Source: Piromyces finnis finn
Lineage: Eukaryota; Fungi; Neocallimastigomycota
Direction: 5' to 3'
Length of the DNA stretch: 64,000 nucleotides
Assembly (NCBI GenBank): GCA_002104945.1
Contig: MCFH01000001.1
Coordinates: 372,001-436,000, forward strand
Shown here: one piece after another, positions 3,667 to 17,717 of the stretch
How positions within the stretch are numbered: position 1 is the stretch's first letter
Layout of the letters: each line of letters opens with the position of its first letter
Program-made: the position numbers and the translations under genes
The notes under the pieces: model-generated
The model's database searches: none
Told to the model about the DNA's origin: nothing
The model's input: the letters and a program-made list of their open reading frames with translations, nothing else

Positions 3667-4885
3667 ATGGTTTTGGTATCAAATTTGAAAAAAACTTTAT
3701 TGTTTATTACACTTTCTTCATTTATTAAATCTAGTATTGCTTTAGAACAATTCATCACTTGTATCAATAATGGAGATATTGCTTTAACTTTTGATGATGG
3801 TCCAAGTTTAGATTATACTAGTAGAATTCTTGATATTCTTGATTATGAAGATGTCAAAGCTACTTTTTTTGTTAACGGTATGAATACATGTGATTTAAAG
3901 AATAATCAAGTTGCTAGAGTATGTTTCTAACCAATATTAAATAAACATGAAAAGAAAATAATAGTAATAATAAAAGAATAGTAAAAGAAAAATATCATTA
4001 ATATTTATAGAATGAATGAATATTTATTTTTTTATTTTTCCTTAATAATAGGATATTATAAAAAGAGAGTATGAAAGTGGTCATGTTATTGCTAGTCATA
4101 CCTATTCTCATCCTCTTACTGGTATTACACCTTTAGGCGAAAAAAAATTGACTTTTGAAATTAATGCATTAAATAATATCCTTTATGATATTGTTGGTGT
4201 AAAACCAGCTTTCTTTAGACCTCCTTTAGGTGAATATACTCCTGAAAACGCAATAGTTCTCGAAAACTGTGGTATCACTGCTGTAAGAAATATTGAATAT
4301 ATTTCAAATTATAATTTAATAAATTTTTTTTCATTTTAATTAATTATTTTATTTTATTCTTTTTTTTTTTTTAAATTTATTATTTAGAATATTTTATGGA
4401 ATTTAGATTCAGAAGATTGGAATTCTCAATATAATGCCACTCAACAATATGTTGATATATTGGGAACTAGTGATCCATCAGTATCTTCATTTATTACATT
4501 AAATCATGATATTCAAGAAGTAACTGCTATGCAAAATTTGCCTATAGTCATTCCATATATTAAAAGTCTCGGATACCGATTTGTTACTATGGATGTATGT
4601 ACTGGTATGAGCGCATATCAAGATGGTAGTAATCCTCCTAAAGTTAGTACAAATTCAACTTCATATAAAAAAGGTAATAATCCTTATATCCCAATAACCT
4701 CTAATTTAAATTCAAACGGTAACACATACGGTAACACATATGGAATGTCTAATAACATGAATAGTTATGATGCTGTCAACAATGAAGGAATAACTTTCGA
4801 TCTTGAGGCTGGTGGTGCAATTCATTCTCATTCTTTTGGATTATTCGCACTATCCTTTTTATTTATCATTTTTTATTTAATTTAA
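3667..4885 (+). CDS. Probably GPI-anchored CE4 chitin deacetylase, 3 exons (3667-3918, 4052-4282, 4388-4885), ~326 aa, catalytic motifs intact
   Basis: Signal-peptide-like N-terminus; TFDDGP, HTYSH, RPPLG, DSEDW, LNH; two phase-0 GT-AG introns give one continuous frame; hydrophobic C-terminal tail ([16 protein letters not shown]). Confidence 0.9.
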
Positions 4886-5563: not shown

Positions 5564-7941
5564 TTAAAATAATAAATATAATGAAGAAATAAGAATCATA
5601 ACGAATGAAGAGGTAATTGGATTAATCTTAATAAATCCGCTTTCACTAAGTTCACCATTATCACTAGATTCACCATTATCAGTATTAACAGTATTACCAT
5701 TATTTATGGTATTAGAGTTGGAGTTGTTACCATTATTGATATTGTTTCCATTGTTACTAACTGGTTTTTCTTCATCTTCACTTTCATTGTCACTTACTTG
5801 GACATATTCGTTATCATTGTCACTATCGACATCGTCATCATCAATATCAATATCTTTATCATTTTCACTTTCACTTTCATTGTCACCTTCACTGCTACTT
5901 TCACTATCACTTGTTGGTTTTGGACCTAATGAAGTAGTGGTTTCAGTAGTAGTGGTTTCAGTAGTAGTGGTTTCAGTAGTAGTAGTTTCAGTAGAAGTAG
6001 TTTCTTCAGTTGTGGTAGAAGTGGAAGTAGTTTCTTCAGTAGTGGTAGAAGTGGAAGTAGTTTCTTCAGTAGTGGTAGAAGTGGAAGTAGTTTCTTCAGT
6101 AGTGGTAGAAGTGGAAGTTGTTTCTTCAGTAGTGGTAGAAGTGGAAGTTGTTTCTTCAGTAGTAGTAGAAGTGGAAGTTGTTTCTTTAGTAGTAGTAGAA
6201 GTGGAAGTTGTTTCTTCAGTAGTAGTGGTTGAAGTTGTTTCTTCAGTAGTAGTAGAAGTGGAAGTAGTTTCTTCAGTAGTAGTAGAAGTGGAAGTTGTTT
6301 CTTCAGTTGTAGTGGTTGAAGTAGTTTCTTCAGTTGTAGTGGTTGAAGTTGTTTCTTCAGTAGTAGTAGAAGTGGAAGTAGTTTCTTCAGTAGTAGTGGT
6401 TGAAGTAGTTTCTTCAGTAGTAGTGGTTGAAGTAGTTTCTTCAGTTGTAGTGGTTGAAGTAGTTTCTTCAGTTGTAGTGGTTGAAGTAGTTTCTTCAGTT
6501 GTAGTGGTTGAAGTAGTTTCTTCAGTTGTAGTGGTTGAAGTAGTTTCTTCTTCAGTAGTAGTGGTTGAAGTAGTTTCTTCTTCAGTAGTAGTGGTTGAAG
6601 TAGTTTCTTCAGTTGTAGTGGTTGAAGTAGTTTCTTCTTCAGTTGTAGTGGTTGAAGTAGTTTCTTCTTCAGTAGTAGTGGTTGAAGTAGTTTCTTCTTC
6701 AGTAGTAGTGGTTGAAGTAGTTTCTTCAATAGTAGTAGTAGATGTTACAGTAGTAGTAATTGGTATAGTTGTGGTAGTAGTAGTTGTTGTTGTTGTAGTA
6801 ATGGTAGTAGTTGTTGTAATTGGTTCTTCGAAATTTGTGGTGGTATCTTCAATATCAACATCATCATCATCAAAATCTTCAAGAAATTCAATAATAGTTG
6901 GGTATGCTGCTCTAGATGCTATTGATGGTTGTACAACTTTAGCCGAGGTAACTAAAGAATCTTCAACATATTCATCTTTTAATCTTTTAACTAATAAAGT
7001 ATCCTCTTCATCAATTTCTTGATAAGCATTTACACCAATACATTCATCTATTGTAACAAATTTATATCCTAAACTTTTTACATAAATAATTATATTTTCC
7101 AATTCGTTTACAGGAGAATTATCATGATTTAGTGTAATAAATGAGTCTGTAGATGGATCTGAATTATCTAATATATTTTTAAATTGTTCTATACCCTTTG
7201 AATTTTTATTCCAATCTTCTGAATCTAAATTCCATAAGATATTCTTTTAATTTTTTTTTTAATTTAATAAATATAAATTATATATTTAAAAAAAATTGGT
7301 ATAAAATATTTTAATAATATTAATAATAGGTTCATATATTATAAATTTTTTCTTTTTTTTACATACAGCATTGAAATCACATTCTTCAAGAACTTCTAAC
7401 TTTGATTCATTATAATCACCATTTGGTGGTCTAAATAATGCTGGCTTAACACCAATAATATCATAAATTGCATTATTTAATTTATTAAGATCTTCTTCTA
7501 ATTCTTCATTACTTAATTTTGAAATACCAATTGGGTATGAATAAGTGTTACTTCCTATGATATGACCTTCACTAAATTGTCTTTCAATGATATCCTATAT
7601 TATTTATTTATTTGATTATTTATTCATTCATTCATTTAATAATTAATATTCAATCAATAATATGTATTTTTTAAAAAAAAATGGAAAATTTTTTATACCT
7701 TTAAACTTTGATTTTCAATAATACCATCTTTTTTTCCATTTACAAAAAATGTTGCTTTAACATTTTCTTTTTTAAGAATATTTAATATACTTTCGGTATA
7801 TAAAACATCTGGACCATCTTCAAATGTTAATGCAATTTCTCCTGGATTACTACAATGATTATATGTTTCGATGTTAACAGCGGTTACTGCATTAAAAATT
7901 GCTGTTAATATTAATAATGATTTTTTAAAACAGGAAAACAT
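5564..7941 (-). CDS. Probably GPI-anchored CE4-fold protein with long Thr/Glu mucin-like stalk, predicted catalytically inactive; 3 exons (7941-7699, 7594-7367, 7243-5564), ~716 aa
   Basis: Spliced translation gives TFEDGP, GSNTYSYP (instead of HTYSH), RPPNG, DSEDW, LNH; then a ~460-aa T/E/D-rich region and a hydrophobic C-terminal tail; both GT-AG introns are phase 0. Confidence 0.9.
5930..6810 (-). repeat. Coding minisatellite of 21-27-nt units encoding (E)ETTSTTTT / EETTSTSTTT repeats
   Basis: About 30 tandem units such as gaagtagtttcttcagtagtagtggtt on the + strand, inside the last exon of the 5564-7941 gene. Confidence 0.9.
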
Positions 7942-9479
7942 TTTTAATGTATTTTTTATAATTATTTAAATTAGTAATTATTTTTTTTATTGATGTTTAA
8001 ATATTGTTAAGACAAAACTATGTTTTTTTTTTTTTTTATTATTATTATATAAATTATTTTATTGTTAATGATATTAAAAAAAAAAAAAAAGAAGAAAAAA
8101 TTGGCATTTTTATGTGTTTTTCGTTTCCATAATTTAACTAATAATAAAAAATAATTTTCTGATAATAATTAATATTAAATTTAAATTTATTTCAAATTCA
8201 AAGTTAATTAACATTAATTAAAAAATAATTATTTAATAATTGATATTTTAAATATTTTAATGGATTTATTATACTAATTAGTCAAGCAGTTTAAATGAAT
8301 ATTTAAATATCCATCTAAATTCAAAAAAATATTTTTTTTTATTATTAATAGGAAAATATATCCAATAATATGAATAAAATATAATAATTAAAAGAGTAAC
8401 ATTAAGTTTATTATAATAAACTTTTTTGAATAACTTTATTACAATGTAATTTAAAGAAGAGTAAACTTTAATCATAATAATTACAATTTCAAAAATAAAA
8501 TTTAAAATTAAAATAAAAAACTATATAATTAAAATTGCAATTATTATATTAATTATGTGGAATACAAGATTTGATTATTATTGACATTATTGATTCTTAA
8601 TTCATGTTTGATTGATGTAAGCTAATATCAAACAATTTATCATACTTCATTTTTGATGAAAATAAGTATATAAAAGTTTCTAAAATTTTAATTAATATTA
8701 TTTATTTCTTATCAATCCACCTATTAAATGATTTTTTGATCTTTATCGCAGTTAAATAAAAATGATAATAGTTAACTTTAAAAGTCCATAATTATCATTT
8801 AAGTTTTATTTTATCAAACAATAAAAATAGAGAATAAATATTATTGAATATTTTTGGATTTTAAATCCATTTATACACATTTATTAATATAATGTAATAA
8901 ATTATATACTACAAAGAATACTAAATTAATTAAATAGATCAAAAGAAATATATAAAAAGAAATATATATTTTATATATATTTCATATTTTACTTTAAATA
9001 TTTATACGTATTCAAGATAAAATATTTTATATCATTGTCATAATGTTAATTATTCAATAAGGTTTAAATAGTTACTTTAAATATTTATAAATATTTTATG
9101 TAATGTTAATTATTTAATAATTAAATATTTAAACTTTATTTATTTAATTAAAATATTTTATAAAAAAAATAAGAAAAAAAAGAATTATGAAAAAAAATTT
9201 TGGATAAATATTTAATTATTATAATAATAGGATTTAGTTAAAAAAAAAGTTTAAAATTTGTATTGACATAATACATTTCATTTATTATTTATTACTAAGC
9301 AATATATTTCATATTTAATATTAATTCTATAATTAAAAGCATTTTGAGAAAAATTAAATATATTTGTCTATAAAATTATACATTTTAATTAGTAGAAAAA
9401 ATTATTTGATGATAATTTAATAATTTAATTTATTATTATTTTTTTATTAGAGTTATTTCTCAACTCATTTTAGTAATAA

Positions 9480-16223: not shown

Positions 16224-17717
16224 ATGAGATACATTAAATATATTTTAGCTGCTATTGCTTTAATTTCAAGTGCAAGTGCTGCCAATGAAGGTAAATGTGG
16301 ACCTGGTTTTGGTTCATGTTCATCTGGTCAATGTTGTTCACAATATGGTTACTGTGGTACCACTAATGATCACTGTGGTACTGGTTGTAAACCAGATTTT
16401 GGTCTCTGTTTATCAACTAAGAAAACCACTACTAAAACAGTAAATAAAAAGACTACTACTAAGGCAGCTGTTACTAAGAAAACTACCACCACAAAGGCTG
16501 CTGTCACCAAAAAGACTACCACCAAAAAGACTACCACTAAAAAGACTACCACTAAAGCAGCTGTCACCAAAAAGACTACCACCACCAAGGCTGTTGTCAC
16601 AAAAAAGACTACCACCACTAAGGCTGCTATCACTAAGAAAACTACTACTGTTAAACCAGTTACTACCACAGTTGCTCCAGTTGAAACTAAATTACCAGTT
16701 TCTACTACTGGTATGTGTGGTCCAGATGATGGTATTTGCCCAGGTACTTCATGTTGTTCTCAATACGGTTTCTGTGGTGTTTCTGATGCCCACTGTGGAA
16801 AGGGTTGTCAATCTGAATTCGGTCGCTGTGGTATCACTGAAACCAAAACTACTACTATAATTAAGAAGACAACCACTATCAAGAACTCTTCTACCACCAC
16901 TGCTGCTAACACTGATAAAATTTCTACTAATGGTAGATGTGGTGCTGAAGATGGTTCCTGCCCAGCGGGTCAATGTTGTTCACAATATGGTTACTGTGGT
17001 AGTACTGAAGATCACTGTGGTACTGGCTGTCAATCTGAATTTGGTTACTGTGGTGAAATTGAAACCGTTTCCGGTTTTAAATACTATTCAAAGTGTATAG
17101 CCAAGAACCAATGGGCTCTTACTTTTGATGATGGTCCATACGAATATGATATTAAATTACTTGATTTACTTAAAGCCAAGGGTGTTAAGGCTACCTTCTT
17201 CATTAATGGTAACAATGTTATGGACATTAGAACTGAAAAAGCAAAAAAGATTATTCAAAGAATGAATAAGGATGGTCACATTATAGCTTCTCACACTTGG
17301 TCTCATGCTAACATTGAAGAAATTTCAAAAAAAGATTTAATTATTGAAATGACTAACCTTGAAAAATACATTTCCGAATACACTGGTAAGAAACCTGCCT
17401 TTATGCGTCCACCATATGGTGCTGGTAATGGTAAGTTAGATATTGCTAAGACTCTTAAAAGTCTTGGTTACACTGCTGCTTGTATGTGGAATGTCGATAC
17501 TCTTGATTGGGAAAAATCCGGTAATGTTGATTATGCTCTTGGTGAATTTAAAAAGAATCTTGGTAAACCAATTCTTTCACTTAACCACAATTACTATGAA
17601 GATATCACCGAAGAAAGATTATTAAAGTTAGTTGAAGCAGAAATTGATTACATGATTTCTAATGGATACACTCCAGTTACTATGGATGAATGTCTTGGTC
17701 TTGAAGCCTATCAATAA
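16224..17717 (+). CDS. Secreted chitin deacetylase: signal peptide, three CBM18 domains, Lys/Thr-rich linkers, CE4 domain
   Basis: 497-aa intronless ORF; three CCSQYG(Y/F)CG domains; TFDDGP, HTWSH, RPPYG, DTLDW, LNH intact. Confidence 0.95.
   Translation: MRYIKYILAAIALISSASAANEGKCGPGFGSCSSGQCCSQYGYCGTTNDHCGTGCKPDFGLCLSTKKTTTKTVNKKTTTKAAVTKKTTTTKAAVTKKTTTKKTTTKKTTTKAAVTKKTTTTKAVVTKKTTTTKAAITKKTTTVKPVTTTVAPVETKLPVSTTGMCGPDDGICPGTSCCSQYGFCGVSDAHCGKGCQSEFGRCGITETKTTTIIKKTTTIKNSSTTTAANTDKISTNGRCGAEDGSCPAGQCCSQYGYCGSTEDHCGTGCQSEFGYCGEIETVSGFKYYSKCIAKNQWALTFDDGPYEYDIKLLDLLKAKGVKATFFINGNNVMDIRTEKAKKIIQRMNKDGHIIASHTWSHANIEEISKKDLIIEMTNLEKYISEYTGKKPAFMRPPYGAGNGKLDIAKTLKSLGYTAACMWNVDTLDWEKSGNVDYALGEFKKNLGKPILSLNHNYYEDITEERLLKLVEAEIDYMISNGYTPVTMDECLGLEAYQ

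Follow-up and report, generated by a model that had tools for sequence, protein, structure and literature searches.

A CE4-domain protein of Piromyces finnis without the metal-binding histidines and with a mucin-like stalk: a putative surface-anchored pseudoenzyme

Results

On the minus strand of the contig MCFH01000001.1 from the anaerobic gut fungus Piromyces finnis, within the 64,000-nucleotide stretch of DNA analyzed here (hereinafter the window, from whose first letter all positions are counted), we delineated a three-exon gene that runs from 7941 to 5564 and codes for a product of 716 aa. The NCBI gene call on the assembly GCA_002104945.1 is identical in both span and product length. A prior sequence-only reading of the locus had given its range as 7243-7941; this takes in exons 1 and 2 and reaches one base into exon 3, but the gene extends to 5564. 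Exon 1 (7699..7941) encodes 81 aa, in which a signal-peptide-like N-terminus is followed by the beginning of a CE4 domain, with motif 1 in the form TFEDG. Intron 1 (7595..7698; 104 nt, GT..AG, phase 0), matched in position by an intron of paralogue D, separates it from exon 2 (7367..7594; 228 nt, 76 aa), which carries motif 2 as NTYSY and motif 3 as RPPNG. Beyond intron 2 (7244..7366; 123 nt, GT..AG, phase 0) lies exon 3 (5564..7243), which encodes the end of the CE4 domain, a linker, repeats, a low-complexity region and a tail; the CE4 portion that opens this exon (7016..7243) has DSEDW as motif 4 and LNH(D) as motif 5, each of them intact.

The protein accordingly reads as a signal-peptide-like N-terminus, a CE4/NodB domain, approximately 300 aa of Thr/Glu/Ser repeats, an acidic and Asn-rich region and a GPI-like tail. 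By sequence composition, an acidic linker (6823..7015) connects the CE4 domain to the repeats, which form a mucin-like stalk (5978..6822). About 26 copies of a 30-nt (10-aa) unit make up the main array of this stalk, and Thr, Glu and Ser account for 63%, 20% and 13% of residues 300-600, respectively. The low-complexity region (5648..5977) is first acidic and Ser/Asp/Glu-rich and then Asn-rich, and the GPI-anchor-like C-terminal signal (5564..5647) consists of SESG, a short spacer and a hydrophobic tail, with the stop codon at 5566-5564. The earlier description of the locus mentioned neither the mucin-like stalk nor the GPI-like tail. Similar C-terminal tails are present in the likely orthologue discussed below and in all B/C/D-type relatives, and the stalk and anchor signal are common to this protein and its active-looking paralogues.

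Multiple observations bear on the soundness of this gene model. The frame has 716 open codons despite the 21.8% GC content of the genome, where a random frame would have about 0.093 stops per codon (P ~4e-31). Four runs of P. finnis contain 0.61-0.71 of the words in 6850-8050, which by our arithmetic is approximately the expectation for a transcript without both introns. Exon 2 is 228 nt long and in the same phase in this gene, in paralogue D and in a 737-aa relative from Anaeromyces robustus, and the intron-less contigs of the likely orthologue are colinear with the gene over both exon junctions. As its own potential refutation, the sequence-only reading had named a different exon 2 restoring HxxxH; this finds no support, as tblastn within the window detects one exon-2-like segment per paralogue and no such segment inside the introns. 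Its description of an otherwise intact gene holds with respect to the reading frame, the splice sites and, as detailed below, 28 of 31 family-conserved positions.

Membership in the CE4 family is recovered independently from both of the first two exons: the Pfam model PF01522 matches exon 1 with 42.9 bits (5.7e-11) and exon 2 with 54.9 bits (1.1e-14), against a gathering cut-off of 23.1, and the exons match CE4 chains in the PDB at 1e-9 to 2e-9. Structure prediction followed by superposition on a fungal chitin deacetylase, which had been suggested as a check, was carried out on the corresponding domain of the likely orthologue (P0157:23-240, 56% identical to the P. finnis domain). The AF2 model has a pLDDT of 94.8, giving a confident NodB fold, and its best structural match in a Foldseek search is the fungal chitin deacetylase 2IW0 (TM 0.85, rmsd 2.0 A); the match to 2VYO has a TM of 0.80 at approximately 26% sequence identity.

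In active CE4 enzymes, the TFDD motif supplies the general base and a metal-binding Asp, H(S/T)xxH supplies the metal-binding His residues, LxH supplies the general acid, and the Arg of motif 3 tethers the base. The P. finnis protein departs from this at three positions, whose codons are exactly as previously read: GAA at 7821-7819 encodes Glu41 in TFEDG, AAC at 7549-7547 encodes Asn97 and TAC at 7537-7535 encodes Tyr101 in NTYSY, the latter two lying in exon 2 (7594-7367), where they had been placed. Thus, Glu41 replaces the general-base Asp, the metal-binding Asp42 being kept (TFED rather than TFDD), and Asn97 and Tyr101 replace both metal-binding His residues of motif 2. HMMER alignments to solved structures concur: the Asn and Tyr fall on both His of H(S/T)xxH in 8he1, and the Glu falls on the first Asp of TFDDG in Bc1960 (5o6y/4l1g).

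The rest of the site is largely preserved. The RPP, DxxDW and LNH elements reported as retained are all read in the protein (as RPPNG, DSEDW and LNH), and with them the Arg and Pro of motif 3, the Trp preceding motif 4 and the Leu-x-His of motif 5; in motif 3, the sugar-contacting aromatic is replaced by Asn, and intact-looking paralogues (RPPLG) likewise have no aromatic there. In active CE4 enzymes, the groove and the pocket for the acetyl methyl group are built from the Arg and Pro of motif 3, the Trp, DxxDW and Leu-x-His (PMC5855634). To quantify the retention, we used a 92-row alignment including 85 other CE4 domains and defined as family-conserved any column conserved in >=85% of the non-degenerate rows. 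The P. finnis protein keeps 28 of the 31 such columns, the three misses being precisely the general-base Asp and the metal-binding His pair; by our arithmetic, the chance that three random changes would all fall in the 7 catalytic or metal-binding columns of the 31 is 35/4495 = 0.008.

Intact CE4 genes neighbor this one in tandem, in a cluster in which two of five CE4 genes are unable to be normal deacetylases; in the syntenic cluster of A. robustus, this is so for three degenerate CE4 genes out of four. Two intron-less metagenome contigs, L002 and L003, each carry one continuous ORF (794 and 639 aa, respectively) with an architecture and C-terminal tail like those of the P. finnis protein and a CE4 domain 56% identical to it, also without both His (TFDNG/NAFLN/RSPNG). 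From their lack of introns, rather than from their records, we infer these contigs to be transcripts; their architecture and a tree node of weak support (37/83) make them the likely orthologue of the P. finnis gene. The exact NTYSY variant, for which a search in related genomes had been proposed, was not found among the best 150 of 1543 matches of the representative search or in word-index searches. Instead, the closest degenerate relatives have motif 2 as NAFLN, NAFNH, HSYSN, QIFIH or QINAQ. Across the closest relatives, the paired positions are E-D, D-N, N-G, S-N or N-N in motif 1 and N..Y, N..N, N..H, H..N, Q..H or Q..Q in motif 2, and the His of motif 5 has also been lost in some.

The best tree has the 10 degenerate rows all to the same side of a branch, where they are sister to the intact B-type clade, a weakly supported placement (66/68); the tree does not resolve a single from a repeated loss of the His residues, the relevant nodes all having <70% bootstrap. 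The terminal branch of the P. finnis protein is 0.54, as against 0.05-0.25 in intact paralogues. The Nei-Gojobori dN/dS of the CE4 domain against L002 is 0.33, a rough value given a dS of 0.91 near saturation and strongly biased codon usage. A value of 0.58 against the within-genome paralogue D was set aside on account of shared codon bias and near-saturated synonymous sites. The long-stalk members have no Pfam record in a large protein collection and are absent from the search results of that collection.

Discussion

With a NodB domain devoid of the His-His ligands and the base, in a gene that is intact, the P. finnis protein fits the category of CE4 pseudoenzymes. This category, typified by ECU11_0510, BA0150 and BA3943, is a functional one and not a clade, the losses being independent. 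ECU11_0510 (2VYO) and BA0150 (4M1B) provide the precedents for inactive and metal-free versions of the domain with the same lesions (PMC5855634, PMC10967932), of which the sequence-only reading made no mention. ECU11_0510, from the fungus-related parasite Encephalitozoon cuniculi, resembles the P. finnis protein in having a NodB fold without the general-base Asp and both His (PMC5855634, PMC10967932), and exon 1 matches it by sequence. However, it has also lost the Arg of motif 3 (PMC10967932), which the P. finnis protein keeps, and no Thr-rich stalk has been described for it; their identity of only about 26% indicates that the loss occurred independently of the P. finnis lineage. BA0150 of Bacillus anthracis has a CE4 fold without the Asp-His-His triad and with the catalytic Asp and His kept (PMC5855634), and in our alignment its motif 2 likewise has non-His residues where the P. 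finnis protein has Asn and Tyr. BA3943 (7BKF/6HM9) is named a "CE4 family pseudoenzyme" in PDB titles, and both it and BA0150 have been placed beside the MurNAc peptidoglycan deacetylases (PMC10967932). Unlike the P. finnis protein, to which they are 22-24% identical, these two are bacterial and have neither a eukaryotic secretion and GPI architecture nor a mucin stalk. The fungal chitin deacetylases (ClCDA 2IW0, AnCDA 2Y8U) share with the P. finnis protein all five CE4 motifs in register; however, the active enzymes have TFDD, HxxxH and an aromatic in RxPY, in contrast to its TFED, NxxxY and RPPN.

The layout of the protein invites a further comparison. The GPI-anchored fungal wall adhesins of the Als, Flo and Epa types have a signal peptide, then a folded N-terminal domain of the ligand-binding type, then long tandem repeats rich in Ser/Thr, and a GPI signal at the C-terminus. 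The sequence of the P. finnis protein shows the same layout: an N-terminal signal, Ser/Thr-rich repeats and an omega-site-like stretch with a hydrophobic tail, three elements of GPI wall proteins, can all be read in it. This is a resemblance of design and not of membership, for its CE4 domain has no sequence or fold relation to the adhesin domains. GPI anchoring of a fungal CE4 protein has a precedent in Cryptococcus Cda2 (PMC3280450).

The proposal of a "metal-free, lectin-like" CE4 domain made in the sequence-only reading can now be taken in two parts. The first is supported: the metal site has been lost in an intact gene with 28 of 31 conserved columns kept, and the likely orthologue and syntenic relatives have also lost the His pair. 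With the Asp-His-His triad reduced to Asp alone, the domain would no longer bind the catalytic metal, and its general base is altered from Asp to Glu; hence, there are good grounds to predict that metal-dependent catalysis has been lost. In other enzyme families, Asn and Tyr can serve as metal ligands, and it is conceivable that the Glu still functions as a base. As for the second part, it is the kept residues, those that in active CE4 enzymes contact the sugar and the acetyl methyl group (PMC5855634), that suggest a lectin-like binding of glycans. The aromatic of motif 3, which touches the sugar in CE4 enzymes active on chito-oligomers, is replaced by Asn in this protein and by a non-aromatic residue in intact paralogues too, so that binding of the chitin type is not assured. 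Candidate ligands might include the chitin or chito-oligomers of the fungus itself and possibly plant acetylxylan. The stalk of approximately 300 aa, Thr-rich and of the O-glycosylation type, would hold the dead CE4 domain outward, and the GPI-anchor signal would bring the protein to the surface of P. finnis, at either the plasma membrane or the cell wall; both the surface location and the glycosylation are predictions from these sequence features. Taken together, we assign a probability of about 0.6 to the reading that this is an expressed, selectively maintained and surface-anchored CE4 pseudoenzyme that binds acetylated glycan without deacetylating it.

Among the alternatives, the one that survives best, albeit as an unlikely one, is that the protein has a structural or regulatory role without binding glycan: it might simply cap a mucin of the wall with a folded domain, modulate an active paralogue such as that encoded by the neighboring gene B, or protect chitin against deacetylation. 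The tandem arrangement with intact CE4 genes and the sharing of stalk and anchor with active-looking paralogues would accord with such a role. However, a mere folded cap would not need its groove and pocket residues to be kept so selectively, and we see no sign of a protein–protein interface. Rather improbable is the persistence of enzymatic activity with a changed chemistry, namely a metal-independent hydrolase or esterase acting via Glu41, Asp42, the Asp of motif 4 and the His of motif 5. The protein does still have the general-acid His together with its partner Asp, the Arg, and a carboxylate at each motif 1 position, and 3CL6 has been described as a non-metal-dependent enzyme of the NodB fold without the motif 1 Asp residues and one His (PMC10967932). 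Against this, the replaced positions of motifs 1 and 2 vary among the closest relatives, some of which lack even the motif 5 His, a pattern expected of former sites freed from constraint and not of a new active site.

We consider it very improbable that a recently inactivated gene is being observed on its way to becoming a functionless pseudogene. While its long terminal branch and the failure of our searches to recover an orthologue with the exact NTYSY could be read in this manner, the long open frame and intact splice sites, the degenerate relatives of the same architecture in other taxa (two of them on intron-less contigs), the dN/dS of 0.33 and the confinement of changes among the family-conserved columns to the catalytic ones all speak against decay. 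Finally, a gene-model artefact concealing a true exon 2 with HxxxH is hardly credible in view of the single exon-2-like segment per paralogue, with none in the introns, the 228-nt exon shared with paralogue D and the A. robustus 737-aa relative, the concordant 716-aa NCBI model and the colinear continuous ORF of the likely orthologue, which has also lost the His residues.

If the dead domain does bind acetylated glycan, as in the reading that we prefer, it would constitute a lectin that arose from the CE4 family, much as the chitinase-like lectins arose from GH18, and a candidate for a receptor or adhesin at the surface of organisms that interest biotechnology for their ability to break down lignocellulose. 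Extending this to the group, a lineage of "CE4 lectins", conserved and syntenic, might exist across the anaerobic gut fungi: one-time chitin deacetylases that have lost metal and base and are now borne, in the manner of adhesins, on long O-glycosylated stalks with GPI anchors. They would serve as surface receptors or adhesins for acetylated polysaccharides, either the chitin of the fungus itself at wall assembly or, more strikingly, acetylated xylan in the colonized plant fibre; we advance this tentatively, as a conjecture more apt to fail than to hold. On the genomic side, the number of CE4 genes in a fungal genome is routinely taken as a guide to its chitin/chitosan and acetylxylan capacity. 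Given the degenerate CE4 genes in these clusters and the long-stalk members without a Pfam record, such censuses may inflate the number of enzymes and at the same time overlook these proteins. To specialists, the finding should be only moderately surprising, since metal-free CE4 pseudoenzymes have previously been described and crystallized; what is unusual here is the adhesin-like stalk on which such a domain is borne.

Replacement of catalytic residues in a CE4 domain

The minus-strand gene at 7941-5564 (gene C) encodes a NodB-type CE4 domain without two of the three metal ligands and with a Glu in place of the general-base Asp. The polysaccharide deacetylase (NodB) domain of CE4, PF01522, is recovered by Pfam from both exon 1 (5.7e-11) and exon 2 (1.1e-14), and HMMER comparisons with solved structures align TFEDG onto the TFDDG of Bc1960 and GSNTYSYP onto the GSHTWSH-type motif of Pst_13661 (8he1). 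The three codons concerned, GAA at 7821-7819, AAC at 7549-7547 and TAC at 7537-7535, lie exactly where the sequence-only reading of the DNA had placed them; each is a single-base step from the usual Asp or His codon. We aligned the translations of the three exons with 88 other CE4 domains (alignment A1) and counted a column as conserved when 85% or more of the non-degenerate rows had the same residue. Gene C matches 28 of the 31 such columns, its sole deviations being general-base Asp to Glu, first His to Asn and second His to Tyr, which together with the codons bears out that reading's observation that the catalytic residues are replaced. Among the retained residues are the Asp that binds the metal, Arg and Pro in motif 3, the Trp before motif 4, DxxDW and Leu-x-His, to which roles in the charge relays, groove walls and acetyl-methyl pocket of CE4 enzymes are assigned (PMC5855634). 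By our own count, the chance of all three changes falling in catalytic columns is 35/4495 (0.008); judged from the alignment, such clustering is not like random drift.

The window, from the anaerobic gut fungus Piromyces finnis, has a GC content of 21.8%, and the gene model comprises three exons. Exon 1 (7941-7699) runs from the ATG at 7941 through 81 codons to a GT; exon 2 (7594-7367) is preceded by an AG at 7596-7595 and has 76 codons followed by GT; exon 3 (7243-5564), preceded by the AT-rich intron 2 with its AG at 7245-7244, ends with the stop codon at 5566-5564. Joined, these give a 716-aa product, and the NCBI gene call at the locus is identical in span and residue number. An alternative exon 2, which the sequence-only reading had set as a check on itself, finds no counterpart: tblastn with the exon-2 peptide returned one segment per paralogue and no other within gene C. 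The two-intron model of paralogue D, which is unique and yields the annotated 638 aa, likewise has a 228-nt exon 2 in identical phase, as does an Anaeromyces robustus relative in length, and the uninterrupted ORF of two intron-less metagenome contigs (L002 and L003) aligns gap-free over both junctions of gene C. This evidence argues against a different exon 2.

A probably maintained and expressed gene

A random frame of this composition would have about 0.093 stops per codon, and 716 open codons would arise by chance with a probability of about 4e-31. Over the CE4 domain, gene C and L002 have a Nei-Gojobori dN/dS of 0.33, which, because of a dS of 0.91 and strong codon bias, is only a rough sign of purifying selection. 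Further, the missing introns of the L002 and L003 relatives give them a transcript-like appearance. In the maximum-likelihood tree the end branches of degenerate proteins measure 0.42-1.1, as against 0.05-0.25 for intact ones, a pattern that fits a constraint that is relaxed rather than absent. Of the words sampled from 6850-8050, four P. finnis runs contain a share of 0.61-0.71; our arithmetic predicts a share of about 1.0 for genomic DNA and of about 0.71 for a spliced transcript whose 5' UTR is short, and the observed shares are no more than suggestive of a spliced transcript. Taken together, we regard gene C as probably a functional, expressed gene.

Predicted stalk-and-anchor architecture

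Following a hydrophobic N-terminus, the CE4 domain ends at about residue 233 and is succeeded by an acidic linker and a stalk of about 300 residues, of which 63% are Thr, 20% Glu and 13% Ser; most of it is encoded by about 26 copies of a 30-nt unit. Beyond the stalk lie a region that is first acidic and then rich in Asn, and a C-terminal tail in which small residues precede a stretch of about 17 hydrophobic ones. From this layout we predict a protein of the wall or membrane that is secreted, O-glycosylated and held by a GPI anchor. Fungal adhesins combine a folded tip, a Ser/Thr stalk and a GPI signal, and gene C resembles them in this overall design. For the predicted GPI signal in particular, there is a precedent in Cryptococcus Cda2, a GPI-anchored fungal CE4 enzyme (PMC3280450).

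Degenerate relatives and their phylogeny

The likely orthologue of gene C, P0157, is encoded on both metagenome contigs (794 aa on L002 and 639 aa on L003) and shares its architecture, with repeats of the TSTEE type, an acidic/Asn region and a tail closely resembling that of gene C. The two CE4 domains are 56% identical, and that of P0157 has the motifs TFDNG, NAFLN, RSPNG, DSEDW and LNH. Both His are again gone, the first being Asn as in gene C; unlike gene C, it retains the base and has lost the metal Asp. The ORFs from the two samples (L002 165-2549; L003 137-2056) differ by 155 aa inside the Thr/Ser/Glu repeats, reflecting either stalk-length polymorphism or assembly collapse of the repeats.

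Other degenerate relatives include P0006 (TFNGC/NAFNH), P0029 (VINNG/QINAQ/LNQ) and P0007 of A. robustus (TFSNG/QIFIH/VNS). The CE4 cluster around the last (MCFG01000073.1 38930-60792; L004 1-21863) matches that of P. finnis, and three of its four CE4 genes are degenerate: its first gene is an intact CBM18-CE4, a 737-aa gene has AFSNG/HSYSN/SPPNG/DLEDL/LNY, and an 871-aa gene has IFNDG/HTFSH/CAPNG/LNH together with poly-Thr and NEPTED repeats and a GPI-like tail. Degeneration is graded, affecting the base only in D-type proteins and the base and/or metal ligands in C-type ones. The replacement residues vary between proteins, as is expected where catalytic sites would be freed from constraint with the fold retained. 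Support in the maximum-likelihood tree is good for the family of GPI-type proteins (97/98), and the clade of intact B-type proteins is supported as well (95/94); all 10 degenerate rows lie beyond one branch with a support of only 66/68, and the node uniting gene C and P0157 has 37/83. With such supports, a single origin of the non-catalytic lineage would be compatible with the tree rather than shown by it.

For the fold, the domain of P0157 (residues 23-240) was modeled with alignment A1 in place of that of gene C, giving a pLDDT of 94.8 and a pTM of 0.92. Foldseek against the PDB matched this model to the Colletotrichum chitin deacetylase 2IW0 (TM 0.85, rmsd 2.0 A), Bc1960 (5O6Y/4L1G; TM 0.81-0.82), the A. 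nidulans CDA 2Y8U (TM 0.82), the inactive E. cuniculi homologue 2VYO (TM 0.80), BA3943 (7BKF/6HM9, titled "CE4 family pseudoenzyme"; TM 0.79-0.80) and BA0150 (4M1B; TM 0.78).

Proposed function

In CE4 catalysis, water activation and polarisation of the acetyl carbonyl fall to the metal, and Asp is the base; ECU11_0510 and BA0150, which are without these metal/base residues, are metal-free and inactive (PMC5855634). We propose that gene C would have lost deacetylation, and loss of the canonical activity is very likely. The domain might still recognise an acetylated sugar chain, since the residues of the groove and the acetyl-methyl pocket are retained; glycan binding is a tentative prediction, at somewhat under even odds. 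The stalk and anchor would then present the binding domain at the cell surface. To the whole statement, namely lost activity, a functional expressed gene and glycan binding, we assign a probability of roughly 0.6.

Published work and PDB entries already include CE4 pseudoenzymes that lack precisely these residues (PMC5855634, PMC10967932); hence, gene C is not a new kind of protein. Less usual are its adhesin-like stalk-and-anchor architecture and the occurrence of such proteins as a small lineage in synteny across anaerobic-fungus genera; within the searchable literature, CE4 pseudoenzymes of Neocallimastigomycota are the subject of no paper that we found. Also less usual is that these long-stalk proteins escape Pfam annotation and protein searches: in a large collection that includes this genome, the gene table lists no Pfam record for either the 716-aa or the 638-aa product, and both are absent from protein-search results that should have included them. 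Such indexes may systematically miss long low-complexity stalk proteins.

The CE4 cluster

Gene C is one of five CE4 genes (A-E) in the window. Gene A (plus strand, from 80 nt before the window to 924) combines CBM18 with a CE4 domain with intact motifs. Paralogue D (minus strand, 13243-11047) has AFNDG, with the base Asp replaced by Asn, and retains HTYSH, RPPHG, DFEDW and LNH, followed by an acidic, Asp/Asn-rich stalk; a GPI-like tail is common to B, C and D. Among the relatives of D, P0002 and P0012 share TFNDG, and P0272, also of the RPPHG type, still has TFDDG. Gene E (plus strand, 16224-17717) encodes 497 aa in a single exon, with three CBM18 domains, an intact CE4 and, at the N-terminus, a Lys-rich region with a weak resemblance to the histone H1-like HC2 (E 0.001, below cut-off). 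Gene B (plus strand, 3667-4885; 326 aa), identical in sequence to P0001 from the homology search, has intact TFDDG/HTYSH. In it, and in the similarly intact-looking GPI-type proteins P0003-P0005, P0015, P0020, P0158 and P0160, RPPLG replaces RxPY; all chito-oligomer-active CE4 enzymes are said to have an aromatic residue in this motif (PMC5855634), and the RPPLG paralogues are without it. Their substrate may not be chito-oligomers.
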